Part shown: positions 1 through 26,100 of the stretch, piece after piece
Numbering within the stretch: the first letter of the stretch is position 1
Layout: every line of letters begins with the position of its first letter
From: Macrostomum lignano
Lineage: Eukaryota
Assembly (NCBI GenBank): GCA_002269645.1
Contig: NIVC01001166.1
Location: forward strand, 124,001-188,000
Direction: 5' to 3'
Length of the DNA stretch: 64,000 nt
Program-made: the position numbers and the translations under genes
The notes under the pieces: model-generated
The model's input: the letters and a program-made list of their open reading frames with translations, nothing else
Told to the model about the DNA's origin: nothing
Database searches by the model: none

Positions 1-2751
1 AGTCGCTGCAGCGCTACTCGCGTCGCATCTGGCTGCAGCGCCGCTCGCGACTGCTCGACCGAGGTCACGACCGAGTTGTCGAACGGGCCTCCGATGCTTC
101 TAAGCCGCGACAGTCGATCCGCCATCAGTCTGGCCACTTCCTCGTTCATTGACCTGTCTGGCTGCGCCTGTTGTTCTACTACTGCTGCGTCGTCCGGTAT
201 CACCTGCGTTTCCTCTTTCTCGTCCTCTGCTAAAGCGGCCGCCGTGGCGCCTCTCTCGTCTACGCGACGTCTGTACTCGCCCAGCTCCGAGTCGAGTCGC
301 TGCAGCGCTACTCGCGTCGCATCTGGCTGCAGCGCCGCTCGCGACTGCTCGACCGAGGTCACGACCGAGTTGTCGAACGGGCCTCCGATGCTTCTAAGCC
401 GCGACAGTCGATCCGCCATCAGTCTGGCCACTTCCTCGTTCATTGACCTGTCTGGCTGCGCCTGTTGTTCTACTACTGCTGCGTCGTCCGGTATCACCTG
501 CGTTTCCTCTTTCTCGTCCTCTGCTAAAGCGGCCGCCGTGGCGCCTCTCTCGTCTACGCGACGTCTGTACTCGCCCAGCTCCGAGTCGAGTCGCTGCAGC
601 GCTACTCGCGTCGCATCTGGCTGCAGCGCCGCTCGCGACTGCTCGACCGAGGTCACGACCGAGTTGTCGAACGGGCCTCCGATGCTTCTAAGCCGCGACA
701 GTCGATCCGCCATCAGTCTGGCCACTTCCTCGTTCATTGACCTGTCTGGCTGCGCCTGTTGTTCTACTACTGCTGCGTCGTCCGGTATCACCTGCGTTTC
801 CTCTTTCTCGTCCTCTGCTAAAGCGGCCGCCGTGGCGCCTCTCTCGTCTACGCGACGTCTGTACTCGCCCAGCTCCGAGTCGAGTCGCTGCAGCGCTACT
901 CGCGTCGCATCTGGCTGCAGCGCCGCTCGCGACTGCTCGACCGAGGTCACGACCGAGTTGTCGAACGGGCCTCCGATGCTTCTAAGCCGCGACAGTCGAT
1001 CCGCCATCAGTCTGGCCACTTCCTCGTTCATTGACCTGTCTGGCTGCGCCTGTTGTTCTACTACTGCTGCGTCGTCCGGTATCACCTGCGTTTCCTCTTT
1101 CTCGTCCTCTGCTAAAGCGGCCGCCGTGGCGCCTCTCTCGTCTACGCGACGTCTGTACTCGCCCAGCTCCGAGTCGAGTCGCTGCAGCACTACTCGCGTC
1201 GCATCTGGCTGCAGCGCCGCTCGCGACTGCTCGACCGAGGTCACGACCGAGTTGTCGAACGGGCCTCCGATGCTTCTAAGCCGCGACAGTCGATCCGCCA
1301 TCAGTCTGGCCACTTCCTCGTTCATTGACCTGTCTGGCTGCGCCTGTTGTTCTACTACTGCTGCGTCGTCCGGTATCACCTGCGTTTCCTCTTTCTCGTC
1401 CTCTGCTAAAGCGGCGCCGTGGCGCTCTCTCGTCTACGCGACGTCTGTACTCGCCCAGCTCCGAGTCGAGTCGCTGCAGCGCTACTCGCGTCGCATCTGG
1501 CTGCAGCGCCGCTCGCGACTGCTCGACCGAGGTCACGACCGAGTTGTCGAACGGGCCTCCGATGCTTCTAAGCCGCGACAGTCGATCCGCCATCAGTCTG
1601 GCCACTTCCTCGTTCATTGACCTGTCTGGCTGCGCCTGTTGTTCTACTACTGCTGCGTCGTCCGGTATCACCTGCGTTTCCTCTTTCTCGTCCTCTGCTA
1701 AAGCGGCCGCCGTGGCGCCTCTCTCGTCTACGCGACGTCTGTACTCGCCCAGCTCCGAGTCGAGTCGCTGCAGCGCTACTCGCGTCGCATCTGGCTGCAG
1801 CGCCGCTCGCGACTGCTCGACCGAGGTCACGACCGAGTTGTCGAAACGGGCCTCCGATGCTTCTAAGCCGCGACAGTCGATCCGCCATCAGTCTGGCCAC
1901 TTCCTCGTTCATTGACCTGTCTGGCTGCGCCTGTTGTTCTACTACTGCTGCGTCGTCCGGTATCACCTGCGTTTCCTCTTTCTCGTCCTCTGCTAAAGCG
2001 GCCGCCGTGGCGCCTCTCTCGTCTACGCGACGTCTGTACTCGCCCAGCTCCGAGTCGAGTCGCTGCAGCGCTACTCGCGTCGCATCTGGCTGCAGCGCCG
2101 CTCGCGACTGCTCGACCGAGGTCACGACCGAGTTGTCGAACGGGCCTCCGATGCTTCTAAGCCGCGACAGTCGATCCGCCATCAGTCTGGCCACTTCCTC
2201 GTTCATTGACCTGTCTGGCTGCGCCTGTTGTTCTACTACTGCTGCGTCGTCCGGTATCCCTGCGCCTCTCTCGTCCTCTGCTAAAGCGGCCGCGCGGCGC
2301 CTCTCTCGTCTACGCGACGTCTGTACTCGCCAGCTCCGAGTCGAGTCGCTGCAGCGCTACTACTCGCGTCGCATCTGGCTGCAGCGCCGCTCGCGACTGC
2401 TCGACCGAGGTCACGACCGAGTTGTCGAACGGGCCTCCGATGCTTCTAAGCCGCGACAGTCGATCCGCCATCAGAGTCTGGCCACTTCCTCGTTCATTGA
2501 CCTGTCTGGCTGCGCCTGTTGTTCTACTACTCTGCGCGTCGTCCGGTATCACCTGCGTTTCCTCTTTCTCGTCCTCTGCTAAGCGGCCGCCGTGGCGCCT
2601 CTCTCGTCTACGCGACGTCTGTACTCGCCCAGCTCCGAGTCGAGTCGCTGCAGCGCTACTCGCGTCGCATCTGGCTGCAGCGCCGCTCGCGACTGCTCGA
2701 CCGAGGTCACGACCGAGTTGTCGAACGGGCCTCCGATGCTTCTAAGCCGCG
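1..2751 (-). repeat. Coding-type tandem array A', about 9.4 units of 294 bp (98 aa per unit on the minus strand); partial paralogue of array A
   Basis: The minus strand reads MNEEVARLMADRLSRLRSIGGPFDNSVVTSVEQSRAALQPDATRVALQRLDSELGEYRRRVDERGATAAALAEDEKEETQVIPDDAAVVEQQAQPDRS repeatedly. The period is 294 (shadow ORF starts at 149, 443, 737, 1031). Units degrade with indels towards the gap. Confidence 0.95.
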
Positions 2752-2765
2752 NNNNNNNNNNNNNN
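2752..2765. other. Assembly gap (14 N)
   Basis: Run of N between two oppositely oriented repeat arrays; true size unknown. Confidence 0.99.
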
Positions 2766-5700
2766 GCGACTGAACGCGGAGCTGGCAGAGTACAAGCGCC
2801 GCCTTGATGAGATCACCGCAGCTGAACAGGCGGAAGCTGCAGCGCCAGAACAGGAGGAGGAAGAGCCAGAAGCTGAGCCGGTCGTCGAGGACGCGGCAAT
2901 GAACGCGGCACTGTTTGACGCTACGATCGAGCGACTGGCGCGTCTGAATCGCATCGGACTGTTCGACGCCTCGGTGCTGACGTCGGTGGAGCAGGCGCGA
3001 GCCGCGCTGCAGCATTCAGCTAGACCCGGAGCGATGCAGCGACTGAACGCGGAGCTGGCAGAGTACAAGCGCCGCCTTGATGAGATCACCGCAGCTGAAC
3101 AGGCGGAAGCTGCAGCGCCAGAACAGGAGGAGGAAGAGCCAGAAGCTGAGCCGGTCGTCGAGGACGCGGCAATGAACGCGGCACTGTTTGACGCTACGAT
3201 CGAGCGACTGGCGCGTCTGAATCGCATCGGACTGTTCGACGCCTCGGTGCTGACGTCGGTGGAGCAGGCGCGAGCCGCGCTGCAGCATTCAGCTAGACCC
3301 GGAGCGATGCAGCGACTGAACGCGGAGCTGGCAGAGTACAAGCGCCGCCTTGATGAGATCACCGCAGCTGAACAGGCGGAAGCTGCAGCGCCAGAACAGG
3401 AGGAGGAAGAGCCAGAAGCTGAGCCGGTCGTCGAGGACGCGGCAATGAACGCGGCACTGTTTGACGCTACGATCGAGCGACTGGCGCGTCTGAATCGCAT
3501 CGGACTGTTCGACGCCTCGGTGCTGACGTCGGTGGAGCAGGCGCGAGCCGCGCTGCAGCATTCAGCTAGACCCGGAGCGATGCAGCGACTGAACGCGGAG
3601 CTGGCAGAGTACAAGCGCCGCCTTGATGAGATCACCGCAGCTGAACAGGCGGAAGCTGCAGCGCCAGAACAGGAGGAGGAAGAGCCAGAAGCTGAGCCGG
3701 TCGTCGAGGACGCGGCAATGAACGCGGCACTGTTTGACGCTACGATCGAGCGACTGGCGCGTCTGAATCGCATCGGACTGTTCGACGCCTCGGTGCTGAC
3801 GTCGGTGGAGCAGGCGCGAGCCGCGCTGCAGCATTCAGCTAGACCCGGAGCGATGCAGCGACTGAACGCGGAGCTGGCAGAGTACAAGCGCCGCCTTGAT
3901 GAGATCACCGCAGCTGAACAGGCGGAAGCTGCAGCGCCAGAACAGGAGGAGGAAGAGCCAGAAGCTGAGCCGGTCGTCGAGGACGCGGCAATGAACGCGG
4001 CACTGTTTGACGCTACGATCGAGCGACTGGCGCGTCTGAATCGCATCGGACTGTTCGACGCCTCGGTGCTGACGTCGGTGGAGCAGGCGCGAGCCGCGCT
4101 GCAGCATTCAGCTAGACCCGGAGCGATGCAGCGACTGAACGCGGAGCTGGCAGAGTACAAGCGCCGCCTTGATGAGATCACCGCAGCTGAACAGGCGGAA
4201 GCTGCAGCGCCAGAACAGGAGGAGGAAGAGCCAGAAGCTGAGCCGGTCGTCGAGGACGCGGCAATGAACGCGGCACTGTTTGACGCTACGATCGAGCGAC
4301 TGGCGCGTCTGAATCGCATCGGACTGTTCGACGCCTCGGTGCTGACGTCGGTGGAGCAGGCGCGAGCCGCGCTGCAGCATTCAGCTAGACCCGGAGCGAT
4401 GCAGCGACTGAACGCGGAGCTGGCAGAGTACAAGCGCCGCCTTGATGAGATCACCGCAGCTGAACGAGGAAGCTCGTCGTCGAGGACGCGGCAATGAACG
4501 CGGCACTGTTTGACGCTACGATCGAGCGACTGGCGCGTCTGAATCGCATCGGACTGTTCGACGCCTCGGTGCTGACGTCGGTGGAGCAGGCGCGAGCCGC
4601 GCTGCAGCATTCAGCTAGACCCGGAGCGATGCAGCGACTGAACGCGGAGCTGGCAGAGTACAAGCGCCGCCTTGATGAGATCACCGCAGCTGAACAGGCG
4701 GAAGCTGCAGCGCCAGAACAGGAGGAAGAGCCAGAAGCTGAGCCGGTCGTCGAGGACGCGGCAATGAACGCGGCACTGTTTGACGCTACGATCGAGCGAC
4801 TGGCGCGTCTGAATCGCATCGGACTGTTCGACGCCTCGGTGCTGACGTCGGTGGAGCAGGCGCGAGCCGCGCTGCAGCATTCAGCTAGACCCGGAGCGAT
4901 GCAGCGACTGAACGCGGAGCTGGCAGAGTACAAGCGCCGCCTTGATGAGATCACCGCAGCTGAACAGGCGGAAGCTGCAGCGCCAGAACAGGAGGAGGAA
5001 GAGCCAGAAGCTGAGCCGGTCGTCGAGGACGCGGCAATGAACGCGGCACTGTTTGACGCTACGATCGAGCGACTGGCGCGTCTGAATCGCATCGGACTGT
5101 TCGACGCCTCGGTGCTGACGTCGGTGGAGCAGGCGCGAGCCGCGCTGCAGCATTCAGCTAGACCCGGAGCGATGCAGCGACTACAAGCGCGCCGCCTTGA
5201 TGAGATCACCGCAGCTGAACAGGCGGAAGCTGCAGCGCCAGAACAGGAGGAGGAAGAGCCAGAAGCTGAGCCGGTCGTCGAGGACGCGGCAATGAACGCG
5301 GCACTGTTTGACGCTACGATCGAGCGACTGGCGCGTCTGAATCGCATCGGACTGTTCGACGCCTCGGTGCTGACGTCGGTGGAGCAGGCGCGAGCCGCGC
5401 TGCAGCATTCAGCTAGACCCGGAGCGATGCAGCGACTGAACGCGGAGCTGGCAGAGTACAAGCGCCGCCTTGATGAGATCACCGCAGCTGAACAGGCGGA
5501 AGCTGCAGCGCCAGAACAGGAGGAGGAAGAGCCAGAAGCTGAGCCGGTCGTCGAGGACGCGGCAATGAACGCGGCACTGTTTGACGCTACGATCGAGCGA
5601 CTGGCGCGTCTGAATCGCATCGGACTGTTCGACGCCTCGGTGCTGACGTCGGTGGAGCAGGCGCGAGCCGCGCTGCAGCATTCAGCTAGACCCGGAGCGA

Positions 5701-7919
5701 TGCAGCGACTGAACGCGGAGCTGGCAGAGTACAAGCGCCGCCTTGATGAGATCACCGCAGCTGAACAGGCGGAAGCTGCAGCGCCAGAACAGGAGGAGGA
5801 AGAGCCAGAAGCTGAGCCGGTCGTCGAGGACGCGGCAATGAACGCGGCACTGTTTGACGCTACGATCGAGCGACTGGCGCGTCTGAATCGCATCGGACTG
5901 TTCGACGCCTCGGTGCTGACGTCGGTGGAGCAGGCGCGAGCCGCGCTGCAGCATTCAGCTAGACCCGGAGCGATGCAGCGACTGAACGCGGAGCTGGCAG
6001 AGTACAAGCGCCGCCTTGATGAGATCACCGCAGCTGAACAGGCGGAAGCTGCAGCGCCAGAACAGGAGGAGGAAGAGCCAGAAGCTGAGCCGGTCGTCGA
6101 GGACGCGGCAATGAACGCGGCACTGTTTGACGCTACGATCGAGCGACTGGCGCGTCTGAATCGCATCGGACTGTTCGACGCCTCGGTGCTGACGTCGGTG
6201 GAGCAGGCGCGAGCCGCGCTGCAGCATTCAGCTAGACCCGGAGCGATGCAGCGACTGAACGCGGAGCTGGCAGAGTACAAGCGCCGCCTTGATGAGATCA
6301 CCGCAGCTGAACAGGTCGTCGAGGACGCGGCAATGAACGCGGCACTGTTTGACGCTACGATCGAGCGACTGGCGCGTCTGAATCGCATCGGACTGTTCGA
6401 CGCCTCGGTGCTGACGTCGGTGGAGCAGGCGCGAGCCGCGCTGCAGCATTCAGCTAGACCCGGAGCGATGCAGCGACTGAACGCGGAGCTGGCAGAGTAC
6501 AAGCGCCGCCTTGATGAGATCACCGCAGCTGAACAGGCGGAAGCTGCAGCGCCAGAACAGGAGGAAGAGCCAGAAGCTGAGCCGGTCGTCGAGGACGCGG
6601 CAATGAACGCGGCACTGTTTGACGCTACGATCGAGCGACTGGCGCGTCTGAATCGCATCGGACTGTTCGACGCCTCGGTGCTGACGTCGGTGGAGCAGGC
6701 GCGAGCCGCGCTGCAGCATTCAGCTAGACCCGGAGCGATGCAGCGACTGAACGCGGAGCTGGCAGAGTACAAGCGCCGCCTTGATGAGATCACCGCAGCT
6801 GAACAGGCGGAAGCTGCAGCGCCAGAACAGGAGGAGGAAGAGCCAGAAGCTGAGCCGGTCGTCGAGGACGCGGCAATGAACGCGGCACTGTTTGACGCTA
6901 CGATCGAGCGACTGGCGCGTCTGAATCGCATCGGACTGTTCGACGCCTCGGTGCTGACGTCGGTGGAGCAGGCGCGAGCCGCGCTGCAGCATTCAGCTAG
7001 ACCCGGAGCGATGGCAGAGTACAAGCGCCGCCTTGATGAGATCACCGCAGCTGAACAGGCGGAAGCTGCAGCGCCAGAACAGGAGGAGGAAGAGCCAGAA
7101 GCTGAGCCGGTCGTCGAGGACGCGGCAATGAACGCGGCACTGTTTGACGCTACGATCGAGCGACTGGCGCGTCTGAATCGCATCGGACTGTTCGACGCCT
7201 CGGTGCTGACGTCGGTGGAGCAGGCGCGAGCCGCGCTGCAGCATTCAGCTAGACCCGGAGCGATGCAGCGACTGAACGCGGAGCTGGCAGAGTACAAGCG
7301 CCGCCTTGATGAGATCACCGCAGCTGAACAGGCGGAAGCTGCAGCGCCAGAACAGGAGGAGGAAGAGCCAGAAGCTGAGCCGGTCGTCGAGGACGCGGCA
7401 ATGAACGCGGCACTGTTTGACGCTACGATCGAGCGACTGGCGCGTCTGAATCGCATCGGACTGTTCGACGCCTCGGTGCTGACGTCGGTGGAGCAGGCGC
7501 GAGCCGCGCTGCAGCATTCAGCTAGACCCGGAGCGATGCAGCGACTGAACGCGGAGCTGGCAGAGTACAAGCGCCGCCTTGATGAGATCACCGCAGCTGA
7601 ACAGGCGGAAGCTGCAGCGCCAGAACAGGAGGAGGAAGAGCCAGAAGCTGAGCCGGTCGTCGAGGACGCGGCAATGAACGCGGCACTGTTTGACGCTACG
7701 ATCGAGCGACTGGCGCGTCTGAATCGCATCGGACTGTTCGACGCCTCGGTGCTGACGTCGGTGGAGCAGGCGCGAGCCGCGCTGCAGCATTCAGCTAGAC
7801 CCGGAGCGATGCAGCGACTGAACGCGGAGCTGGCAGAGTACAAGCGCCGCCTTGATGAGATCACCGCAGCTGAACAGGCGGAAGCTGCAGCGCCAGAACA
7901 GGAGGAGGAAGAGCCAGAA
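2766..7919 (+). repeat. Coding tandem array B, about 19 units of 273 bp (91 aa)
   Basis: Unit MNAALFDATIERLARLNRIGLFDASVLTSVEQARAALQHSARPGAMQRLNAELAEYKRRLDEITAAEQAEAAAPEQEEEEPEAEPVVEDAA. ATGs at 2899, 3172, 3445 etc. Units are near-identical, with several deletion variants. Confidence 0.97.
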
Positions 7920-10900
7920 CCAGATGATGAAGCATACATCCTCTCTGAAGCATTTGATGAAAATTTGACATCTTTTTCTAAACATTTTTATTCGACGGAT
8001 TCCATGGTGTGCAGCATTGATCGGCTTTTGAGCGTTTTTGATTGGTTTCGATATAGGGTTTATCGTGGTCTAACGTCATTTTGCTGCGTACTTCAGGCAC
8101 AGTTTGTTGGAGCTGCCCTTCGACAGTTAGTGCGTCAGCTTCAACTAATGACTTCATTGTGTAGAGAGGATTTGGTTTGTGGTCCTGTTAAAGAAATTCT
8201 TTTCGCGGTTCAGCAAGAACCTCTTTGGTCTGAGATTAGAAAGCGCAACGAGGCATCATTTTCATATCTCTCATTGTGGATTGAGAGGTTCGGTGACGCG
8301 GATGTTGTTCCCGCAGACGCTGCTTGTGTCGGTCTGCATTATTTTTCTGAGCAATATTTCTCAGCCGTGAAGACATTTCAGCGGTACGGTCAGTACTGGT
8401 CTGGCGTTCACGTATGTCTCCTGAAAATAAGTGAGACACTGCAGAGCCATATAACTGAAGCGTCTCGTAGTTACCGCGAAACAGTGTTGGCTATTGAAAG
8501 ATACGCCAGGCTAAGCAAATCTTTGACGAAATTCGAGTATGCTTTGCTAAAATCAATTCAATGTATTGTTCAGGCGGACAAAAATCATCTTGAAGTCATT
8601 CAGTGCGCTCTCTGCCGTATTCCAGTTCATCATCGTGAGTTAAGATATTTTTCGGAAGAAACGAGAGAAAAGCTACTTAAAGCGTATCTAAGTACCAACT
8701 TTCAAGGCAACACTTGGCAAAAGTACGCGATGCTATTCGCTAAGGCAGACGAAATGTTAGACTGTCATATGCAAGATAAAAAGAAGGCTAGAGCGGCAAG
8801 AAGGTCTATTTTTCGAATGAAACAACTCTTAAAGTACTTCACAACCGACTTCGATACAACAAAAACGTATATACTATCTACGGGAGTTTGGGAGCAACAA
8901 GACCGCACAGTCTCAAAACTACCTCAACTGGGGCCACTAATAGTCGAAATAGACAGCGATTCCGAAATCGCTGACGACCAGGTCCACCATCAAGGACTCG
9001 ACGTTATTAATCCAACGAAAATGTCACTTAAGTTTGACACGTTAGAAGAGCTATTGAACACGGAAGTGGCCAGACTCATGGCGGATCGACTGTCGCGGCT
9101 TAGAAGCATCGGAGGCCCGTTCGACAACTCGGTCGTGACCTCGGTCGAGCAGTCGCGAGCGGCGCTGCAGCCAGATGCGACGCGAGTAGCGCTGCAGCGA
9201 CTCGACTCGGAGCTGGGCGAGTACAGACGTCGCGTAGATGAGAGAGGCGCCCCGGCCGCTTTAGCAGAGGACGAGAAAGAGGAAGCGCAGGGGATACCGG
9301 ACGACGCAGCAGTAGTAGAACAACAGGCGCAGCCAGACAGGTCAATGAACGAGGAAGTGGCCAGACTCATGGCGGATCGACTGTCGCGGCTTAGAAGCAT
9401 CGGAGGCCCGTTCGACAACTCGGTCGTGACCTCGGTCGAGCAGTCGCGAGCGGCGCTGCAGCCAGATGCGACGCGAGTAGCGCTGCAGCGACTCGACTCG
9501 GAGCTGGGCGAGTACAGACGTCGCGTAGATGAGAGAGGCGCCCGGCCGCTTTAGCAGAGGACGAGAAAGAGGAAGCGCAGGGGATACCGGACGACGCAGC
9601 AGTAGTAGAACAACAGGCGCAGCCAGACAGGTCAATGAACGAGGAAGTGGCCAGACTCATGGCGGATCGACTGTCGCGGCTTAGAAGCATCGGAGGCCCG
9701 TTCGACAACTCGGTCGTGACCTCGGTCGAGCAGTCGCGAGCGGCGCTGCAGCCAGATGCGACGCGAGTAGCGCTGCAGCGACTCGACTCGGAGCTGGGCG
9801 AGTACAGACGTCGCGTAGATGAGAGAGGCGCCCCGGCCGCTTTAGCAGAGGACGAGAAAGAGGAAGCGCAGGGATACCGGACGACGCAGCAGTAGTAGAA
9901 CAACAGGCGCAGCCAGACAGGTCAATGAACGAGGAAGTGGCCAGACTCATGGCGGATCGACTGTCGCGGCTTAGAAGCATCGGAGGCCCGTTCGACAACT
10001 CGGTCGTGACCTCGGTCGAGCAGTCGCGAGCGGCGCTGCAGCCAGATGCGACGCGAGTAGCGCTGCAGCGACTCGACTCGGAGCTGGGCGAGTACAGACG
10101 TCGCGTAGATGAGAGAGGCGCCCGGCCGCTTTAGCAGAGGACGAGAAAGAGGAAGCGCAGGGGATACCGGACGACGCAGCAGTAGTAGAACAACAGGCGC
10201 AGCCAGACAGGTCAATGAACGAGGAAGTGGCCAGACTCATGGCGGATCGACTGTCGCGGCTTAGAAGCATCGGAGGCCCGTTCGACAACTCGGTCGTGAC
10301 CTCGGTCGAGCAGTCGCGAGCGGCGCTGCAGCCAGATGCGACGCGAGTAGCGCTGCAGCGACTCGACTCGGAGCTGGGCGAGTACAGACGTCGCGTAGAT
10401 GAGAGAGGCGCCCCGGCCGCTTTAGCAGAGGACGAGAAAGAGGAAGCGCAGGGGATACCGGACGACGCAGCAGTAGTAGAACAACAGGCGCAGCCAGACA
10501 GGTCAATGAACGAGGAAGTGGCCAGACTCATGGCGGATCGACTGTCGCGGCTTAGAAGCATCGGAGGCCCGTTCGACAACTCGGTCGTGACCTCGGTCGA
10601 GCAGTCGCGAGCGGCGCTGCAGCCAGATGCGACGCGAGTAGCGCTGCAGCGACTCGACTCGGAGCTGGGCGAGTACAGACGTCGCGTAGATGAGAGAGGC
10701 GCCCGGCCGCTTTAGCAGAGGACGAGAAAGAGGAAGCGCAGGGGATACCGGACGACGCAGCAGTAGTAGAACAACAGGCGCAGCCAGACAGGTCAATGAA
10801 CGAGGAAGTGGCCAGACTCATGGCGGATCGACTGTCGCGGCTTAGAAGCATCGGAGGCCCGTTCGACAACTCGGTCGTGACCTCGGTCGAGCAGTCGCGA

Positions 10901-13900
10901 GCGGCGCTGCAGCCAGATGCGACGCGAGTAGCGCTGCAGCGACTCGACTCGGAGCTGGGCGAGTACAGACGTCGCGTAGATGAGAGAGGCGCCCGGCCGC
11001 TTTAGCAGAGGACGAGAAAGAGGAAGCGCAGGGGATACCGGACGACGCAGCAGTAGTAGAACAACAGGCGCAGCCAGACAGGTCAATGAACGAGGAAGTG
11101 GCCAGACTCATGGCGGATCGACTGTCGCGGCTTAGAAGCATCGGAGGCCCGTTCGACAACTCGGTCGTGACCTCGGTCGAGCAGTCGCGAGCGGCGCTGC
11201 AGCCAGATGCGACGCGAGTAGCGCTGCAGCGACTCGACTCGGAGCTGGGCGAGTACAGACGTCGCGTAGATGAGAGAGGCGCCCCGGCCGCTTTAGCAGA
11301 GGACGAGAAAGAGGAAGCGCAGGGGATACCGGACGACGCAGCAGTAGTAGAACAACAGGCGCAGCCAGACAGGTCAATGAACGAGGAAGTGGCCAGACTC
11401 ATGGCGGATCGACTGTCGCGGCTTAGAAGCATCGGAGGCCCGTTCGACAACTCGGTCGTGACCTCGGTCGAGCAGTCGCGAGCGGCGCTGCAGCCAGATG
11501 CGACGCGAGTAGCGCTGCAGCGACTCGACTCGGAGCTGGGCGAGTACAGACGTCGCGTAGATGAGAGAGGCGCCCCGGCCGCTTTAGCAGAGGACGAGAA
11601 AGAGGAAGCGCAGGGGATACCGGACGACGCAGCAGTAGTAGAACAACAGGCGCAGCCAGACAGGTCAATGAACGAGGAAGTGGCCAGACTCATGGCGGAT
11701 CGACTGTCGCGGCTTAGAAGCATCGGAGGCCCGTTCGACAACTCGGTCGTGACCTCGGTCGAGCAGTCGCGAGCGGCGCTGCAGCCAGATGCGACGCGAG
11801 TAGCGCTGCAGCGACTCGACTCGGAGCTGGGCGAGTACAGACGTCGCGTAGATGAGAGAGGCGCCCCGGCCGCTTTAGCAGAGGACGAGAAAGAGGAAGC
11901 GCAGGGGATACCGGACGACGCAGCAGTAGTAGAACAACAGGCGCAGCCAGACAGGTCAATGAACGAGGAAGTGGCCAGACTCATGGCGGATCGACTGTCG
12001 CGGCTTAGAAGCATCGGAGGCCCGTTCGACAACTCGGTCGTGACCTCGGTCGAGCAGTCGCGAGCGGCGCTGCAGCCAGATGCGACGCGAGTAGCGCTGC
12101 AGCGACTCGACTCGGAGCTGGGCGAGTACAGACGTCGCGTAGATGAGAGAGGCGCCCCGGCCGCTTTAGCAGAGGACGAGAAAGAGGAAGCGCAGGGGAT
12201 ACCGGACGACGCAGCAGTAGTAGAACAACAGGCGCAGCCAGACAGGTCAATGAACGAGGAAGTGGCCAGACTCATGGCGGATCGACTGTCGCGGCTTAGA
12301 AGCATCGGAGGCCCGTTCGACAACTCGGTCGTGACCTCGGTCGAGCAGTCGCGAGCGGCGCTGCAGCCAGATGCGACGCGAGTAGCGCTGCAGCGACTCG
12401 ACTCGGAGCTGGGCGAGTACAGACGTCGCGTAGATGAGAGAGGCGCCCCGGCCGCTTTAGCAGAGGACGAGAAAGAGGAAGCGCAGGGGATACCGGACGA
12501 CGCAGCAGTAGTAGAACAACAGGCGCAGCCAGACAGGTCAATGAACGAGGAAGTGGCCAGACTCATGGCGGATCGACTGTCGCGGCTTAGAAGCATCGGA
12601 GGCCCGTTCGACAACTCGGTCGTGACCTCGGTCGAGCAGTCGCGAGCGGCGCTGCAGCCAGATGCGACGCGAGTAGCGCTGCAGCGACTCGACTCGGAGC
12701 TGGGCGAGTACAGACGTCGCGTAGATGAGAGAGGCGCCCCGGCCGCTTTAGCAGAGGACGAGAAAGAGGAAGCGCAGGGGATACCGGACGACGCAGCAGT
12801 AGTAGAACAACAGGCGCAGCCAGACAGGTCAATGAACGAGGAAGTGGCCAGACTCATGGCGGATCGACTGTCGCGGCTTAGAAGCATCGGAGGCCCGTTC
12901 GACAACTCGGTCGTGACCTCGGTCGAGCAGTCGCGAGCGGCGCTGCAGCCAGATGCGACGCGAGTAGCGCTGCAGCGACTCGACTCGGAGCTGGGCGAGT
13001 ACAGACGTCGCGTAGATGAGAGAGGCGCCCGGCCGCTTTAGCAGAGGACGAGAAAGAGGAAGCGCAGGGGATACCGGACGACGCAGCAGTAGTAGAACAA
13101 CAGGCGCAGCCAGACAGGTCAATGAACGAGGAAGTGGCCAGACTCATGGCGGATCGACTGTCGCGGCTTAGAAGCATCGGAGGCCCGTTCGACAACTCGG
13201 TCGTGACCTCGGTCGAGCAGTCGCGAGCGGCGCTGCAGCCAGATGCGACGCGAGTAGCGCTGCAGCGACTCGACTCGGAGCTGGGCGAGTACAGACGTCG
13301 CGTAGATGAGAGAGGCGCCCCGGCCGCTTTAGCAGAGGACGAGAAAGAGGAAGCGCAGGGGATACCGGACGACGCAGCAGTAGTAGAACAACAGGCGCAG
13401 CCAGACAGGTCAATGAACGAGGAAGTGGCCAGACTCATGGCGGATCGACTGTCGCGGCTTAGAAGCATCGGAGGCCCGTTCGACAACTCGGTCGTGACCT
13501 CGGTCGAGCAGTCGCGAGCGGCGCTGCAGCCAGATGCGACGCGAGTAGCGCTGCAGCGACTCGACTCGGAGCTGGGCGAGTACAGACGTCGCGTAGATGA
13601 GAGAGGCGCCCGGCCGCTTTAGCAGAGGACGAGAAAGAGGAAGCGCAGGGGATACCGGACGACGCAGCAGTAGTAGAACAACAGGCGCAGCCAGACAGGT
13701 CAATGAACGAGGAAGTGGCCAGACTCATGGCGGATCGACTGTCGCGGCTTAGAAGCATCGGAGGCCCGTTCGACAACTCGGTCGTGACCTCGGTCGAGCA
13801 GTCGCGAGCGGCGCTGCAGCCAGATGCGACGCGAGTAGCGCTGCAGCGACTCGACTCGGAGCTGGGCGAGTACAGACGTCGCGTAGATGAGAGAGGCGCC

Positions 13901-16900
13901 CCGGCCGCTTTAGCAGAGGACGAGAAAGAGGAAGCGCAGGGGATACCGGACGACGCAGCAGTAGTAGAACAACAGGCGCAGCCAGACAGGTCAATGAACG
14001 AGGAAGTGGCCAGACTCATGGCGGATCGACTGTCGCGGCTTAGAAGCATCGGAGGCCCGTTCGACAACTCGGTCGTGACCTCGGTCGAGCAGTCGCGAGC
14101 GGCGCTGCAGCCAGATGCGACGCGAGTAGCGCTGCAGCGACTCGACTCGGAGCTGGGCGAGTACAGACGTCGCGTAGATGAGAGAGGCGCCCGGCCGCTT
14201 TAGCAGAGGACGAGAAAGAGGAAGCGCAGGGGATACCGGACGACGCAGCAGTAGTAGAACAACAGGCGCAGCCAGACAGGTCAATGAACGAGGAAGTGGC
14301 CAGACTCATGGCGGATCGACTGTCGCGGCTTAGAAGCATCGGAGGCCCGTTCGACAACTCGGTCGTGACCTCGGTCGAGCAGTCGCGAGCGGCGCTGCAG
14401 CCAGATGCGACGCGAGTAGCGCTGCAGCGACTCGACTCGGAGCTGGGCGAGTACAGACGTCGCGTAGATGAGAGAGGCGCCCCGGCCGCTTTAGCAGAGG
14501 ACGAGAAAGAGGAAGCGCAGGGGATACCGGACGACGCAGCAGTAGTAGAACAACAGGCGCAGCCAGACAGGTCAATGAACGAGGAAGTGGCCAGACTCAT
14601 GGCGGATCGACTGTCGCGGCTTAGAAGCATCGGAGGCCCGTTCGACAACTCGGTCGTGACCTCGGTCGAGCAGTCGCGAGCGGCGCTGCAGCCAGATGCG
14701 ACGCGAGTAGCGCTGCAGCGACTCGACTCGGAGCTGGGCGAGTACAGACGTCGCGTAGATGAGAGAGGCGCCCGGCCGCTTTAGCAGAGGACGAGAAAGA
14801 GGAAGCGCAGGGGATACCGGACGACGCAGCAGTAGTAGAACAACAGGCGCAGCCAGACAGGTCAATGAACGAGGAAGTGGCCAGACTCATGGCGGATCGA
14901 CTGTCGCGGCTTAGAAGCATCGGAGGCCCGTTCGACAACTCGGTCGTGACCTCGGTCGAGCAGTCGCGAGCGGCGCTGCAGCCAGATGCGACGCGAGTAG
15001 CGCTGCAGCGACTCGACTCGGAGCTGGGCGAGTACAGACGTCGCGTAGATGAGAGAGGCGCCCCGGCCGCTTTAGCAGAGGACGAGAAAGAGGAAGCGCA
15101 GGGGATACCGGACGACGCAGCAGTAGTAGAACAACAGGCGCAGCCAGACAGGTCAATGAACGAGGAAGTGGCCAGACTCATGGCGGATCGACTGTCGCGG
15201 CTTAGAAGCATCGGAGGCCCGTTCGACAACTCGGTCGTGACCTCGGTCGAGCAGTCGCGAGCGGCGCTGCAGCCAGATGCGACGCGAGTAGCGCTGCAGC
15301 GACTCGACTCGGAGCTGGGCGAGTACAGACGTCGCGTAGATGAGAGAGGCGCCCGGCCGCTTTAGCAGAGGACGAGAAAGAGGAAGCGCAGGGGATACCG
15401 GACGACGCAGCAGTAGTAGAACAACAGGCGCAGCCAGACAGGTCAATGAACGAGGAAGTGGCCAGACTCATGGCGGATCGACTGTCGCGGCTTAGAAGCA
15501 TCGGAGGCCCGTTCGACAACTCGGTCGTGACCTCGGTCGAGCAGTCGCGAGCGGCGCTGCAGCCAGATGCGACGCGAGTAGCGCTGCAGCGACTCGACTC
15601 GGAGCTGGGCGAGTACAGACGTCGCGTAGATAGAGAGGCGCCCCGGCCGCTTTAGCAGAGGACGAGAAAGAGGAAGCGCAGGGGATACCGGACGACGCAG
15701 CAGTAGTAGAACAACAGGCGCAGCCAGACAGGTCAATGAACGAGGAAGTGGCCAGACTCATGGCGGATCGACTGTCGCGGCTTAGAAGCATCGGAGGCCC
15801 GTTCGACAACTCGGTCGTGACCTCGGTCGAGCAGTCGCGAGCGGCGCTGCAGCCAGATGCGACGCGAGTAGCGCTGCAGCGACTCGACTCGGAGCTGGGC
15901 GAGTACAGACGTCGCGTAGATAAGAGAGGCGCCCCGGCCGCTTTAGCAGAGGACGAGAAAGAGGAAGCGCAGGGGATACCGGACGACGCAGCAGTAGTAG
16001 AACAACAGGCGCAGCCAGACAGGTCAATGAACGAGGAAGTGGCCAGACTCATGGCGGATCGACTGTCGCGGCTTAGAAGCATCGGAGGCCCGTTCGACAA
16101 CTCGGTCGTGACCTCGGTCGAGCAGTCGCGAGCGGCGCTGCAGCCAGATGCGACGCGAGTAGCGCTGCAGCGACTCGACTCGGAGCTGGGCGAGTACAGA
16201 CGTCGCGTAGATGAGAGAGGCGCCCGGCCGCTTTAGCAGAGGACGAGAAAGAGGAAGCGCAGGGGATACCGGACGACGCAGCAGTAGTAGAACAACAGGC
16301 GCAGCCAGACAGGTCAATGAACGAGGAAGTGGCCAGACTCATGGCGGATCGACTGTCGCGGCTTAGAAGCATCGGAGGCCCGTTCGACAACTCGGTCGTG
16401 ACCTCGGTCGAGCAGTCGCGAGCGGCGCTGCAGCCAGATGCGACGCGAGTAGCGCTGCAGCGACTCGACTCGGAGCTGGGCGAGTACAGACGTCGCGTAG
16501 ATGAGAGAGGCGCCCCGGCCGCTTTAGCAGAGGACGAGAAAGAGGAAGCGCAGGGGATACCGGACGACGCAGCAGTAGTAGAACAACAGGCGCAGCCAGA
16601 CAGGTCAATGAACGAGGAAGTGGCCAGACTCATGGCGGATCGACTGTCGCGGCTTAGAAGCATCGGAGGCCCGTTCGACAACTCGGTCGTGACCTCGGTC
16701 GAGCAGTCGCGAGCGGCGCTGCAGCCAGATGCGACGCGAGTAGCGCTGCAGCGACTCGACTCGGAGCTGGGCGAGTACAGACGTCGCGTAGATGAGAGAG
16801 GCGCCCCGGCCGCTTTAGCAGAGGACGAGAAAGAGGAAGCGCAGGGGATACCGGACGACGCAGCAGTAGTAGAACAACAGGCGCAGCCAGACAGGTCAAT

Positions 16901-19900
16901 GAACGAGGAAGTGGCCAGACTCATGGCGGATCGACTGTCGCGGCTTAGAAGCATCGGAGGCCCGTTCGACAACTCGGTCGTGACCTCGGTCGAGCAGTCG
17001 CGAGCGGCGCTGCAGCCAGATGCGACGCGAGTAGCGCTGCAGCGACTCGACTCGGAGCTGGGCGAGTACAGACGTCGCGTAGATAAGAGAGGCGCCCGGC
17101 CGCTTTAGCAGAGGACGAGAAAGAGGAAGCGCAGGGGATACCGGACGACGCAGCAGTAGTAGAACAACAGGCGCAGCCAGACAGGTCAATGAACGAGGAA
17201 GTGGCCAGACTCATGGCGGATCGACTGTCGCGGCTTAGAAGCATCGGAGGCCCGTTCGACAACTCGGTCGTGACCTCGGTCGAGCAGTCGCGAGCGGCGC
17301 TGCAGCCAGATGCGACGCGAGTAGCGCTGCAGCGACTCGACTCGGAGCTGGGCGAGTACAGACGTCGCGTAGATAGAGAGGCGCCCCGGCCGCTTTAGCA
17401 GAGGACGAGAAAGAGGAAGCGCAGGGGATACCGGACGACGCAGCAGTAGTAGAACAACAGGCGCAGCCAGACAGGTCAATGAACGAGGAAGTGGCCAGAC
17501 TCATGGCGGATCGACTGTCGCGGCTTAGAAGCATCGGAGGCCCGTTCGACAACTCGGTCGTGACCTCGGTCGAGCAGTCGCGAGCGGCGCTGCAGCCAGA
17601 TGCGACGCGAGTAGCGCTGCAGCGACTCGACTCGGAGCTGGGCGAGTACAGACGTCGCGTAGATGAGAGAGGCGCCCCGGCCGCTTTAGCAGAGGACGAG
17701 AAAGAGGAAGCGCAGGGGATACCGGACGACGCAGCAGTAGTAGAACAACAGGCGCAGCCAGACAGGTCAATGAACGAGGAAGTGGCCAGACTCATGGCGG
17801 ATCGACTGTCGCGGCTTAGAAGCATCGGAGGCCCGTTCGACAACTCGGTCGTGACCTCGGTCGAGCAGTCGCGAGCGGCGCTGCAGCCAGATGCGACGCG
17901 AGTAGCGCTGCAGCGACTCGACTCGGAGCTGGGCGAGTACAGACGTCGCGTAGATGAGAGAGGCGCCCCGGCCGCTTTAGCAGAGGACGAGAAAGAGGAA
18001 GCGCAGGGGATACCGGACGACGCAGCAGTAGTAGAACAACAGGCGCAGCCAGACAGGTCAATGAACGAGGAAGTGGCCAGACTCATGGCGGATCGACTGT
18101 CGCGGCTTAGAAGCATCGGAGGCCCGTTCGACAACTCGGTCGTGACCTCGGTCGAGCAGTCGCGAGCGGCGCTGCAGCCAGATGCGACGCGAGTAGCGCT
18201 GCAGCGACTCGACTCGGAGCTGGGCGAGTACAGACGTCGCGTAGATGAGAGAGGCGCCCCGGCCGCTTTAGCAGAGGACGAGAAAGAGGAAGCGCAGGGA
18301 TACCGGACGACGCAGCAGTAGTAGAACAACAGGCGCAGCCAGACAGGTCAATGAACGAGGAAGTGGCCAGACTCATGGCGGATCGACTGTCGCGGCTTAG
18401 AAGCATCGGAGGCCCGTTCGACAACTCGGTCGTGACCTCGGTCGAGCAGTCGCGAGCGGCGCTGCAGCCAGATGCGACGCGAGTAGCGCTGCAGCGACTC
18501 GACTCGGAGCTGGGCGAGTACAGACGTCGCGTAGATAAGAGAGGCGCCCCGGCCGCTTTAGCAGAGGACGAGAAAGAGGAAGCGCAGGGGATACCGGACG
18601 ACGCAGCAGTAGTAGAACAACAGGCGCAGCCAGACAGGTCAATGAACGAGGAAGTGGCCAGACTCATGGCGGATCGACTGTCGCGGCTTAGAAGCATCGG
18701 AGGCCCGTTCGACAACTCGGTCGTGACCTCGGTCGAGCAGTCGCGAGCGGCGCTGCAGCCAGATGCGACGCGAGTAGCGCTGCAGCGACTCGACTCGGAG
18801 CTGGGCGAGTACAGACGTCGCGTAGATAGAGAGGCGCCCCGGCCGCTTTAGCAGAGGACGAGAAAGAGGAAGCGCAGGGGATACCGGACGACGCAGCAGT
18901 AGTAGAACAACAGGCGCAGCCAGACAGGTCAATGAACGAGGAAGTGGCCAGACTCATGGCGGATCGACTGTCGCGGCTTAGAAGCATCGGAGGCCCGTTC
19001 GACAACTCGGTCGTGACCTCGGTCGAGCAGTCGCGAGCGGCGCTGCAGCCAGATGCGACGCGAGTAGCGCTGCAGCGACTCGACTCGGAGCTGGGCGAGT
19101 ACAGACGTCGCGTAGATGAGAGAGGCGCCCCGGCCGCTTTAGCAGAGGACGAGAAAGAGGAAGCGCAGGGGATACCGGACGACGCAGCAGTAGTAGAACA
19201 ACAGGCGCAGCCAGACAGGTCAATGAACGAGGAAGTGGCCAGACTCATGGCGGATCGACTGTCGCGGCTTAGAAGCATCGGAGGCCCGTTCGACAACTCG
19301 GTCGTGACCTCGGTCGAGCAGTCGCGAGCGGCGCTGCAGCCAGATGCGACGCGAGTAGCGCTGCAGCGACTCGACTCGGAGCTGGGCGAGTACAGACGTC
19401 GCGTAGATGAGAGAGGCGCCCCGGCCGCTTTAGCAGAGGACGAGAAAGAGGAAGCGCAGGGGATACCGGACGACGCAGCAGTAGTAGAACAACAGGCGCA
19501 GCCAGACAGGTCAATGAACGAGGAAGTGGCCAGACTCATGGCGGATCGACTGTCGCGGCTTAGAAGCATCGGAGGCCCGTTCGACAACTCGGTCGTGACC
19601 TCGGTCGAGCAGTCGCGAGCGGCGCTGCAGCCAGATGCGACGCGAGTAGCGCTGCAGCGACTCGACTCGGAGCTGGGCGAGTACAGACGTCGCGTAGATG
19701 AGAGAGGCGCCCCGGCCGCTTTAGCAGAGGACGAGAAAGAGGAAGCGCAGGGATACCGGACGACGCAGCAGTAGTAGAACAACAGGCGCAGCCAGACAGG
19801 TCAATGAACGAGGAAGTGGCCAGACTCATGGCGGATCGACTGTCGCGGCTTAGAAGCATCGGAGGCCCGTTCGACAACTCGGTCGTGACCTCGGTCGAGC

Positions 19901-20460
19901 AGTCGCGAGCGGCGCTGCAGCCAGATGCGACGCGAGTAGCGCTGCAGCGACTCGACTCGGAGCTGGGCGAGTACAGACGTCGCGTAGATGAGACAGGCGC
20001 CGCTTCAGCTCTAGTAGAAGAGGAGGATATTGATTCGGAGCGGAAATCGGCGTCGACACTTTTTCCGGTCCCTTTGTCTAGTCCTCGGTATTCGCAGGGC
20101 ATTGCAAGTCCTAGTCCGGAGCTTATTGATGGTGTTTCGGCATTGTCTACTCTTGACGGATATTCAATGCCTTCATTTGGTATTGGTGCACCATCATTAT
20201 TGGTTTCGCCGTTGGAGGAGTTTGTTGAGCTAGATTCTAGGTCGATGCGGAACCTGCAGTCCGGTGACGCAGCCGACATGCTGGATTACTTGGCTGCTCA
20301 AGTTCGGCGTGCGGACGCAGCCGTTTTCCAGGTGCTATCTGATAGAAGCCGCTTGCTGTCGGCGGATGAGAACTGTCTACAAAATATTAACTCATCGTTT
20401 CAGGTCATTGAGAATCGGTTTGGTGACTCGAACATTACCAAGGCAAATTTGGAGCAATAG
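2767..20460 (+). CDS. Giant tandem-repeat protein (5'-partial, about 5,900 aa if frameshifts are repaired): array B, unique 380 aa, array A, unique ~155-aa C-terminus
   Basis: ORF 4494-9554 runs in frame from array B through the unique region into array A. ORF 19804-20460 runs in frame from the last A unit into a unique tail ending at TAG 20458-20460. The interruptions are one garbled deletion near 4466-4490 and 17 single-base deletions at three recurrent sites in the A unit. No introns are needed. Confidence 0.7.
9057..19993 (+). repeat. Coding tandem array A, about 38 units of 291 bp (97 aa)
   Basis: Unit MNEEVARLMADRLSRLRSIGGPFDNSVVTSVEQSRAALQPDATRVALQRLDSELGEYRRRVDERGAPAALAEDEKEEAQGIPDDAAVVEQQAQPDRS. 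The longest uninterrupted run is 11086-13041. Confidence 0.97.
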
Positions 20461-23140: not shown

Positions 23141-26100
23141 ATGATGGCATCCGCGTCAAATGCGGACGCTCAGATGATAGCAGACGATGTCCCGGAGCTG
23201 GACGCTGAGCTCACCACCGAGCAGCTTCTGGACCTGTGTCGCCGGCAGACTGACCGGGTTGACGCCCTGCTGCACCAAGCGCTCGAACAGCGCCTGCGGC
23301 TGCTGCTCAGGGAAGAGCGGGTGGTTGGCTTGGCCGATCGATTTGGCAGCGAGTTGCAAACTTTTGCCAAATGTTCGGTCTCGGACAATGTAGATTAATT
23401 TTTGCTGCTTTAACTTTGCTAAGCAGTTCGCAGCTATTCAATTCTATGATAAAATGCATTGGCTCCATCGCACTTCCATTGTTGTCCAATCGATTCTCTA
23501 TGCGGCTAATCGCAATACGGGACGCCGGCCGACTAACAATAGAAACATAAAATGCCTACTCATGCAAGTAGTCAGGATCAAATATGCAATAGAAATATAC
23601 AATTAATGAAAAAATTATAATGCTATGTGAAACACCAGCCAAAGTTTTTCAGGAGCAATCCTCACCGCAAACTGATGTAATACGCGTAAAGCATAGGAGC
23701 CTTCCCTTGTCGAATCGAAAAGCCACGTACAGAAAATCGGGAGGGGGCGATCGTTGGGCGCCATCGGGGCGCCATCGGGAGGGGTACCATCGAAGGGCGC
23801 CATCGGGAGGGGGTGCCATCGGAGGGCGCCATCGGGAGGGGTGCCATCGGAGGGCGCCATCGGGGGCGCCATCAGTAGGGGGTGCCATCGGAGGGCGCCA
23901 TCGAGAGGGGGTGCCATCGGAGGTCGCCATCGGGAAGCGCCATCGGGGGGGGTACCATCGTGGCGCCATAGGAGGGCGCCGTCTGAGGAGTCTAATCAGC
24001 TGGCAAGGTGGCGCCTTAGCTTTTTCCAGCGGCTACATCAAAAAATAAATAAATTTGTTTTGCTATCGAATTTTCTCCGTTTATTTCTTTAACTGCTTAT
24101 TGTCAGCACGGCGGGCACAATTTCTGTCTCAGTTGAAGTGTTTCCAATAGGTGCACTTATCCTTTGGATTTAAGCTGCTCGATAGGCCACAGTTGAATGC
24201 TTGGGCAAACTCTTTGTTTTGGGACATGCCCAGGTTCACTCTGGTTTCCTTGCGGATGGGCCCATTGAACTGTTTGACAGCCGCACCTGAGCTGTCGCGT
24301 CTGTACATGAGCTGCACTGCTACAGTGAAGAACATCTGCTTGTGTAAATGTTTTACATATCGCATCATCACATTACCCCAGTCCAGAAAAAAGTGTCTAA
24401 AACTAGCTGACAATTTTGCTTCACCCAAGATTCTATTTTGATAAACTAAGCTATTCTTAGACTCAGATGAGCAGTTCGAATCAATCTGTCGTCAAGTTCC
24501 GAGGTGGTTTGACCACAGACTGCATGGCTACAGATGAGCGATCAGGAAAACTACGCTATTCTCATGCATGCACTACGCATTCCGGTCAATAAAGCAAGTT
24601 GAACAAACTCCAGCTCTCCAGAACCTAAGTCACGGATCCCGCCAAGGACTCCGATGTGGCACCTTCGGTGCTGGACCAGCTTAATGTGCTCTCGGCACGA
24701 ATCGCGGCATTCGAGGAAGTTTTCCGCAGCTTGGACAGCCTGTCGGAGACGGCGCCGGCCATCGGGCACCGGGTGAAGGGCAGCGTGGGCCTGCTGTCCG
24801 CTGTGTTCGATGAGCAGTGCTCGCTGCTGCTGGCCGGCACCATCGGGCGCAGGCTGCGCTCGGTGGCAAACCGGCCGGGCCATCACTGCGACATCTACCG
24901 ATCGGTGCTGGCCACGCGCGAAGTCATGACCGGGAAGCCCGACTGGGCGGCCGTGCTAGACAAGTACCCGGCCATACTCAGCCCCATTGACAGGTGGGTT
25001 GGGCAGTTAACTGCAGTTCGCTTCGTGCGGTGCTTTCACAAACTCGAAATTTCCCATCATGTAGAGTTACCCGTGCTTTTTTAAATGAATATACCTGTGT
25101 CAGTCCCGCTTTTTGGGGTGTCACTTTCACTTCCGTGATGCCTGCAGTGTGCTCAATGTGTTTTAGTGTTGGAAGTGGTCCAGAGCGGCGCTCTGATGTG
25201 CCAGCGGCCCAGGCTCGATTCCAAGTGCAGCCAAATTAATTTGGAGCTAAATTGGAATCTTGACTCTCTGCTCGTGCAATTAACACCATTGAGGGCCAAC
25301 CCCCAAGGCGCAGTGAAGTGTACATGCCTAACGATAAATAAAATTAGGGCCGCCGTGCACTCCTGTGTGCCTGCTCAGGGGAGTCGACGGAGTGGGTAGC
25401 GATGTCTCACGCCGGTTGTGCGACAATGTCCCTTAAAGTGCGCCAGGGTGCACACAGCCCCTGCCTCTAACTAAAGTATTAATGCTTACCGGCCCGCAGG
25501 TTCCTGTACCTGTACCGCTGTCCCGCCTGCGGCCCGGATCCCACGGACAACTGCGCAGGCGACCAGATGCGCGCCGCGCTCAATCAAATCGACGCCCAGA
25601 TCGCGTGGTACCGAGGCGGCGGCTGCCCGTATCAACGCCAGGTGCACGAGAGCCTTCTGCAGCTGCGCGACTGGCTGCGGACCAGACTGAGGCCCGGCCT
25701 GCCCTGGCACGACCTGTCCCAGCGGCTGGCGGACCGCTACGCCCAGCTGGACAGCTGGTCCCGCGTCTGCTGCAGCGCCGTCTACGCGGCCGCTTGGCGA
25801 ATCATGCGGGCTGGCGTCTACGCCGACTCCACTGCCGCCGCCATGTTTCTGCTGCACCCCAACACGCAGCACGGCAGGTCAGTTTGGCCTGTCCAGCCCT
25901 GCTGCTCCAGTCCACTCCAACCAGCTCCAACCAACTCCAACCAGCTCCAACCAACTCCAACCAGCTCCATTCCAATCCAACCTGCTCCAGTCCACTCCAA
26001 CCTGCTCCAGTCCACTCCAACCTGCTCCAGTCCACTCCGACCTGCTCCAGTCCACTCCGACCTGCTCCAGTCCACTCCGACCCGCCTTAGTCCACTCCAC

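Follow-up and report, generated by a model that had tools for sequence, protein, structure and literature searches.

Giant proteins made of tandem-repeat small helical bundles are a known kind. In spectrin, dystrophin and nesprin, which are giant and mostly intracellular, tandem three-helix bundles serve as elastic scaffolds or spacers. Staphylococcus Ebh, with its FIVAR/GA modules, and protein A consist of dozens of tandem three-helix bundles of ~45-70 amino acids, which form a rod, are highly identical and vary in copy number. In mucins, involucrin and the PEVK/E-rich parts of titin, near-identical in-frame units also differ in copy number, are accompanied by acidic spacers and are homogenised by unequal crossing-over. 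We here describe a locus of the flatworm Macrostomum lignano that belongs to this kind, namely two tandem arrays, A and B, in a window of 64,000 nucleotides (NIVC01001166.1:124001-188000 of the GenBank assembly GCA_002269645.1, Mlig_3_7). An initial annotation, made from the letters of this stretch, had proposed that A and B encode the same unrecognised domain of ~63 residues and were amplified as separate arrays. The locus differs from each of the systems above. Spectrin repeats are ~106 residues long, joined by continuous helices and highly diverged, whereas the unit described here has a domain of 60-75 residues plus an acidic linker of 29-59 residues, and its copies are near-identical. Ebh and protein A are bacterial, secreted and cell-wall anchored, and they lack long acidic linkers and unique domains between arrays; modules of the Ebh/protein A type gave no sequence match and no significant structural match to our unit. 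Repeats of mucins, involucrin and PEVK are mostly disordered, whereas the unit here has a predicted folded domain that is kept across three anciently diverged arrays. As a 'tandem-repeat giant protein', which designates a kind and not a homologous family, the locus shows one long coding sequence with in-frame, foldable repeats.

Mlig_3_7 is a Canu assembly of PacBio reads that was polished by Pilon and joined into scaffolds by SSPACE, and ~64% of its bases were scored as error-free by REAPR (PMC5730564). Simple and tandem repeats make up 15% of the M. lignano genome, and the gene models of the assembly are transcriptome-based (PMC5730564). We located arrays by Tandem Repeats Finder and exact anchors. 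Homologues were sought among 5.8e9 and 1.84e9 proteins and in metagenome and viral contigs.

We found that A and B are internal repeats of one gene and not independent arrays, since B, a unique segment that we call mid, A and a unique C-terminal tail share one reading frame (Table 1). Specifically, an open reading frame (ORF) at 4494..9554 spans B units, mid and the start of the A array. The mid segment (43% guanine plus cytosine, GC) contains 0 stop codons in this frame vs 14-30 in each of the other five frames, and the tail, which continues the frame of the last A core, also contains 0 stops, with its other frames behaving as those of mid. The initial annotation was right that both arrays encode the domain, and the two peptides it quoted are exact translations of the window; the arrays are not separate, as mid carries a single frame from one into the other.

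Table 1. Coordinates of the features found in the window (position 1 is the first letter of the 64,000 nucleotides).
Feature	Coordinates	Strand	Description
A'-type array	1..2751	-	294-bp (98-residue) units, ~9.4 copies in the window; from minus-strand anchor matches and translation
14-N run	2752..2765	.	scaffold join of two contigs
B array	2766..7919	+	partial unit and 19 units of 273 bp (91 residues)
'mid' unique domain	7920..9054	+	378 residues, sharing the frame of B (upstream) and A (downstream)
A array	9055..20001	+	38 units of 291 bp (97 residues), some of 290 bp
C-terminal tail and stop	20002..20460	+	unique, ~152 residues; stop codon 20458-20460
mid-paralogue gene	24656..27269	+	exons 24656-24993, 25500-25877 and 26387-27269; 532 residues, without a repeat array

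Each A unit consists of a 63-residue core and a 34-residue acidic linker, and each B unit of a 62-residue core and a 29-residue acidic linker; the 38 A cores span 9055 to 19992, and the 19 B cores have starts from 2899 to 7674. The unit lengths of all array types in the genome (273, 291, 294 and 354 bp) are multiples of 3. Variants of the B unit of 270, 255, 252 and 222 bp are in frame, and the 230-bp unit at 4264, which has a 43-bp deletion, shifts it, so that 5 of the 6 variant-length units (4 of the 5 variant lengths) keep the frame. The remaining B units are identical to each other, and four other loci have the same B unit. Note that a loose seven-unit pattern occurs twice in the B array between 4264 and 7400 (a deletion of 43 or 51 bp, a deletion of 3 bp, a wild-type unit, a deletion of 18 or 21 bp, and three wild-type units), where the deletions are similarly placed and unequal in size. 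The frame that the arrays share with the unique mid and tail, together with the long open frames of other copies described below, argues most strongly for a coding sequence.

The genome carries at least 3 copies of the gene. A profile of the A and B cores, run with full HMMER against 1.84e9 representative proteins, found P0004 (PAA54909.1, 'hypothetical protein BOX15_Mlig011518g2', M. lignano) at E = 8.8e-24, and annotated fragments of other gene copies are named 'hypothetical protein BOX15_Mlig011518'. In P0004, the core occurs in a third version, C (...ELMISRLNKLKASGLYDESVLTSVGMARALL...RLDGALDSYKK), and after it comes a second unique domain, midC. At such an E-value, chance does not account for the similarity of the cores. 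The profile search that the initial annotation had called for thus yielded a third core version in the same genome and relatives in M. lignano only; proteins from the arrays were limited in occurrence to assembly GCA_002269645.1 (NIVC01...). Across the gene copies, the C array has 17-26 units of 354 bp (118 residues) and is followed by midC (~370 residues), the B array has 18-47 units and is followed by mid, and the A/A' array has 12-38 units of 97/98 residues and is followed by the tail. A candidate start reads MERKSSEKA(S/L)KQPPEE; in locus L004, a stop codon in the same frame lies two codons before it. The order of the gene would be Met, C array, midC, B array, mid, A/A' array and tail.

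Long open frames were observed in two of these loci. The gap-free L004 has one ORF of 3,351 codons that comprises 18 B units, mid, 11.7 A' units, the tail and the stop codon, and in L005, C, midC and B lie in a frame that stays open for at least 6,743 codons. Each copy has a few frame changes, at differing positions; for example, a run of A before the B array breaks the frame in L003 and L004 and reads through in L005. The plus-strand gene of the window has lost its 5' end, with the start codon, C array, midC and some B units, at the 14-N gap; the other copies show these parts. The A' array at the left end of the window represents the 3' part of a second gene copy, in inverted orientation, whose own tail and stop lie further left, outside the window. 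In L002, which is a 100% match to window 11325..1, this A' array continues to a tail 96% identical to that of the window, and the window tail is also 96% identical to that of L004. Several frameshifts lie in the A' array near the gap. The inverted copy (window 1-2765 and L002 8575-21152, with A' array, tail and the same neighbour gene) meets the B array across the 14 N. Since the two copies thus stand head-to-head without 5' parts between them, an error in the SSPACE join or in the gap size is probable; a large inverted duplication would be the alternative.

Taken together, we consider it likely that A and B are two of the three arrays of a single giant, apparently intronless and lineage-restricted coding gene of M. 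lignano. In the simplest reading, the full protein has roughly 6,000-11,000 residues, and the assembled copies carry scattered indel errors. Expression is indicated indirectly, as the transcript-based annotation calls genes on the arrays.

We next consider the core domain itself. The A and B cores are identical at 35 of 63 positions (55.6%; tblastn E = 9e-16), as the initial annotation had counted, and the conserved blocks listed there are the invariant columns of the A-B alignment. Cores of the three array types are 39-56% identical at the protein level. The residues invariant across A, B and C (R-L..L...G..D.SV.TSV...RA.L ... RL...L..Y) are mostly hydrophobic or capping, which suggests conservation for folding and not for a catalytic or ligand site. 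In agreement with the earlier description of dissimilar, acidic linkers, those of A and B do not align, and they are acidic (isoelectric point, pI, ~4.05) and rich in Ala and Glu. The linkers after the domains, of 29-59 residues, are probably disordered. No Cys was found in the repeats, and the units encode unit-specific tryptic peptides such as LNAELAEYK and SIGGPFDNSVVTSVEQSR.

The ratio of nonsynonymous to synonymous substitution rates (dN/dS; Nei-Gojobori) of the cores was below 1 in each pair, at 0.60 for A-B (bootstrap 95% interval 0.33-1.09, hence weak alone), 0.30 for A-C (0.16-0.70) and 0.52 for B-C (0.23-0.95), with dS from 0.5 to 2.2 across the pairs. The tail gave a dN/dS of 0.42 against the inverted copy, and omega was ~0.4 for both mid and tail between copies, with few substitutions. 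Protein identity in the proposed frame was 23/59 for A-C vs 10-16 in other frames, and 28/59 for B-C vs 15-23 in other frames, while the same test does not discriminate for A-B (an antisense frame gave 34/61).

AlphaFold2 modelled the B unit as three helices at residues 6-30, 35-51 and 56-83 of 91, with a mean predicted local distance difference test (pLDDT) score of 79.5, a predicted template modelling (pTM) score of 0.61 and low confidence only at the linker ends. The three-helix segment spans 78 residues of the 91-residue unit in this model, slightly past the 63-residue core on both sides. The unit is accordingly modelled as a three-helix domain of 60-75 residues (helix, G-x-[FY]-D-x-S turn, helix, loop, helix), which is the arrangement around a G-x-F-D turn put forward initially, with helices 1 and 3 somewhat longer than had been thought. 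For mid, AlphaFold2 gave an all-helical model of low confidence. Mid and midC are 25% identical over 337 residues (E = 2e-38). The core is a real domain within a giant orphan gene and not satellite DNA.

To place the unit among known families, we compared it with sequence and structure databases. No Pfam-A family reached its gathering threshold in hmmscan with the A, B and C units, mid, tail, P0004 or the neighbouring gene described below; for mid, tail, P0004 and P0013, the database protein of that neighbour, hmmscan gave nothing. None of the three outcomes that the initial annotation had named as refuting its reading (core dN/dS near 1, a low-confidence or disordered model, a known Pfam repeat) was thus observed. 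The best Pfam hit was HBM (PF16591) at 15.2 bits vs a cut-off of 29.8 (E ~0.015), and RF-1 (PF00472), Apolipoprotein (PF01442), Ish1 (PF10281) and ASNSD1-SEP were other sub-threshold noise (E >= 0.04). Sequence and profile searches of the PDB returned only 53 residues of Thermotoga KDPG aldolase and designed cages derived from this enzyme, at E ~1e-3 to 0.02; as a fragment of a TIM barrel, this was rejected as a chance match. The core profile found no relatives among metagenome and viral contigs, and the whole gene, mid alone and a profile of mid, midC and the neighbour retrieved M. lignano proteins only. Judged from these searches, the core and mid appear to be undescribed domains that are lineage-restricted as far as the searched databases reach.

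A Foldseek search of the unit model against PDB and BFVD gave nothing below E = 0.49 and generic helical bundles only. The best-superposing folds, at template modelling (TM) scores of ~0.5, were MIT domains, the N-terminus of TBCC and other generic three-helix bundles. None of the three folds named for comparison in the initial annotation (MIT, BAG and spectrin) matched significantly. The MIT domain (Vps4, NRBF-2, LIP5) is, like the unit, an antiparallel three-helix bundle of similar size, with 8-15% identity, but MIT domains are single-copy, N-terminal and ESCRT-binding, unlike the tandem unit. The MIT structures 2crb, 4niq and 4txp reached TM 0.43-0.55 at E 4.7-7.4 and probability <= 0.23, with no Pfam MIT match, so MIT was rejected; the resemblance as modelled would be that of a generic three-helix bundle and not evidence of homology. 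BAG (4hwd_B, TMq 0.30, E 7.4, probability 0.05) was rejected as well, and so was the spectrin repeat, which had no Pfam match and no spectrin chain among the best 50 of 64 Foldseek matches with E <= 10.

As assembled in the window, the A array is not one open frame, since 19 of its 36 complete units have a 1-bp deletion that shortens them to 290 bp. Thirteen of the deletions are in a C4 or G4 run (unit positions 197 and 237), and 6 are at a GG doublet (position 187). These three sites are all in the linker, and the A cores are unchanged, with no substitutions or stops; apart from the deletions, the A array varies only at unit position 187, where three units have A instead of G. At the sites of the C4 and G4 runs, A' units read GCCACGGCGG and CAGGTGA and thus lack both runs, and the A' units of L004 show no frameshift over 11.7 units. 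In addition, frameshift density climbs sharply beside gaps and contig ends. Since the deletions fall in runs or at a doublet, A' units without the runs are free of frameshifts and the density rises near gaps, the 1-bp frameshifts of the window are probably long-read (PacBio) homopolymer or assembly errors in a stretch beyond the reach of short-read polishing. Apparently divergent A units at L001 13800-17184 proved to be the same unit full of indels beside a gap and were set aside as useless for evolutionary analysis.

A different explanation is that the A array of the window copy, if not the whole copy, is decaying as a pseudogene, with real deletions that were spread by unequal crossing-over and with translation stopping in the second A unit. 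In its favour, 1 of 18 B units is out of frame in addition to the 19 A units, and the redundancy of at least 3 gene copies would permit decay. The A array also carries the same five-unit pattern twice at 16899-19514 (G187A, a deletion at 187, two wild-type units, a deletion at 237) and strictly alternates between 291- and 290-bp units at 12832-15446. Such repeated patterns hint that some of the 1-bp deletions might be real and themselves amplified. On the other hand, each deletion removes one base from a run (C4, G4) or from a GG doublet, as is typical of long-read error, and the frameshift-free A' units, the increase of frameshifts towards contig ends and gaps, and the cores free of substitutions and stops all speak for error. 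We therefore regard decay of the window copy as unlikely.

Besides these patterns, several points weigh against an intact giant gene as we read it. No assembled copy has the whole gene open, and each requires at least one frame correction. Literature and supplement searches returned no expression or literature record for Mlig011518. The A-B dN/dS taken alone is not significantly below 1, and A-B differences at the three codon positions are unskewed (15/17/23). The alignment given to AlphaFold2, made of A, A', B and C, held only 6 sequences, and the mid model (pLDDT 43) was unusable and not taken into the fold search. Finally, the perfect identity of units may come partly from Canu read correction and Pilon polishing.

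That identity bears on the history of the gene. Units within an array are identical, and between loci (the B array of the window, L001, L003, L004 and L005) the consensus units, of 273 nt for B, 354 nt for C and 294 nt for A', show zero differences, while mid differs at 14-18 of 1,135 nt (1.2-1.6%) between the window and L001/L004. Either inter-locus homogenisation or an artefact of Canu and Pilon accounts for the unit identity between loci. Both upstream arrays, C and B, are followed by paralogous mid domains. An ancestral module of array plus mid would have been duplicated long ago, given cores that are 39-56% and mids that are 25% identical, and each array would then have been amplified and kept homogeneous by unequal crossing-over or gene conversion, which would explain that copy numbers differ between homeologous loci. 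The initial annotation had proposed an old duplication followed by separate amplification of each version; this sequence of events holds, but the duplicated unit was larger (an array with its mid of ~370 residues), and there are three arrays, not two. The arrays also differ from their surroundings in composition, with 62-64% GC (0.73 at third codon positions, GC3, in the cores) against 43% in mid (GC3 0.40), 50% in the tail and 42% in the flank (20461-22000), a contrast that may be the footprint of GC-biased gene conversion.

As for function, the protein from the B array to the tail has a pI of 4.56, with 17.5% Ala and 13.1% Glu. The candidate N-terminus is hydrophilic and not signal-peptide-like, and Pfam scans found no lectin, vWD, EGF or other extracellular domain. 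Given an N-terminus unlike a signal peptide, no extracellular domain in the scans, no Cys in the repeats, and bundles that alternate with acidic linkers in an acidic protein, we tentatively suggest from architecture and composition that the protein may work inside the cell as a polyanionic scaffold or spacer of the beads-on-a-string type, or as an entropic spring; this is the likeliest of the roles considered, though held with some doubt. By analogy, it would act like a spectrin- or PEVK-type element while being related to neither. In such a protein, ~50-110 identical helical bundles would give a multivalent surface, and the acidic linkers would give extensibility. A bolder proposal, which we hold to be unlikely in its entirety, is that the unit founds a three-helix family confined to Macrostomum, that the host protein serves some flatworm-specific structure (sperm, stylet, adhesive organ or ciliary apparatus, for example) as a lineage-specific elastic or cytoskeletal element, and that the arrays are identical across homeologous loci through ongoing gene conversion, which would also have driven their GC to 63%. 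The protein would then present ~100 identical bundles on acidic springs, together with two paralogous all-alpha hubs.

The giant size, tandem-repeat architecture and copy-number variation would also suit a structural material that is secreted or lies outside the cell (adhesive, mucus, eggshell or ejaculate, for instance), as do many giant repeat proteins from flatworms and other invertebrates, and Wunderer and co-workers are said to have described in 2019 that M. lignano makes giant repetitive adhesion proteins. However, the sole candidate start is the hydrophilic one, with its in-frame stop two codons upstream in L004, the repeats lack Cys, no extracellular Pfam domain was found, and the known adhesives are Lys/Arg-rich, in contrast to the acidic linkers here. 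We consider a secreted material quite improbable.

Very improbable, in our estimate, is a divergent helix-turn-helix module of the HeH, SAP or HA type that binds nucleic acid and that would make the protein a giant multivalent tether of chromatin or RNA. What brings it up is the resemblance of R-L-x-x-L-x-x-I-G-x-F-D to the last helix of the HA domain, and two HA-repeat proteins, P0005 (E = 1e-8) and P0008 (E = 8e-5), were pulled in by the core profile, with E-values that are inflated by repeat summation. HA repeats are, like the unit, a tandem domain of ~64 residues, which Pfam predicts to be three-helical, and they share the 17-residue motif RLxxxRxxxLxxIGF with helix 1; however, the motif lies at the end of the HA domain and at the start of the new one. 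When aligned with the HA units of P0005 by hhalign, the unit matched over 18 columns at a probability of 30%, and PF03457 (HA), SAP and LEM gave no hmmscan match even at E <= 10, so the HA domain was rejected and the relation, at the sequence level, appears to be one of motif resemblance only. The signal for HeH, SAP and LEM was weak, with one unit matching Ish1 at E = 0.17 and none of these structures among the top Foldseek matches, and the acidic charge (pI 4.6) is unfavourable to nucleic-acid binding.

That the arrays are non-coding satellite or minisatellite DNA with accidental open frames might be suggested by a window and a genome dense in tandem repeats (PMC5730564 for the genome), by the open antisense strand of the GC-rich arrays and by the near-equal A-B identity in an antisense frame. 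This idea is effectively refuted already and retains next to no probability. The arrays are in frame with unique sequences that have no other open frame, and unit lengths, like most indels, come in multiples of 3. At a nucleotide identity of 49-70%, all three array types share one residue pattern and have dN/dS below 1, and for A-C and B-C the sense frame stands clearly above the others. In addition, the fold is confidently predicted and the gene models are transcript-based.

The sequence around the giant gene was also examined. The mid-paralogue gene (Table 1), ~4 kb downstream, was recognised by a profile of mid and midC, which matched window 26328-27266 at E = 1.3e-9, and its GT-AG splice model is confirmed by the database protein P0013 (A0A1I8I6Q5, uncharacterised, M. 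lignano). Its protein has no core domain. The same neighbour follows the inverted copy. Within this neighbour gene, we noted a low-complexity stretch rich in Gly, Asp and Arg and a 20-bp tandem array in intron 2. Upstream of the giant gene, a tubulin-family gene is present in two copies (L004 1-233 and L003 155-1012), and the synteny is conserved between these homeologous loci. The rest of the window, from 20500 to 64000, is a near-continuous mosaic of dozens of short tandem arrays with periods of 3 to 42 bp, many of them 0.3-1.3 kb long, and includes a degenerate TTAGGG-like interstitial run at 45849-46011. On the minus strand, an exon-like ORF at 45264-45773 clearly matches the sodium:dicarboxylate symporter family (SDF; E = 3e-22), and an ORF at 48583-49542 has a sub-threshold match to the DDE_3 transposase (E = 3.7e-6, 27.3 bits vs 28.6), probably of a Tc1/mariner-like element.

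What looks like 17 kb of satellite DNA, split by the annotation among small 'hypothetical proteins', becomes a single giant gene whose architecture is defined. Two domains without earlier description come with it, a small helical one and an all-alpha one of ~370 residues, both so far seen in M. lignano only. This is a lineage-specific gene; it represents no new kind of biology, and it neither opens nor settles a long-standing question. For genome work, it is a case in which tandem arrays in a polyploid long-read assembly conceal a coding gene, and it offers a natural system for concerted evolution and GC-biased conversion within a coding array. For flatworm biology, it provides a candidate structural protein in an established model that is amenable to RNA interference and transgenesis.

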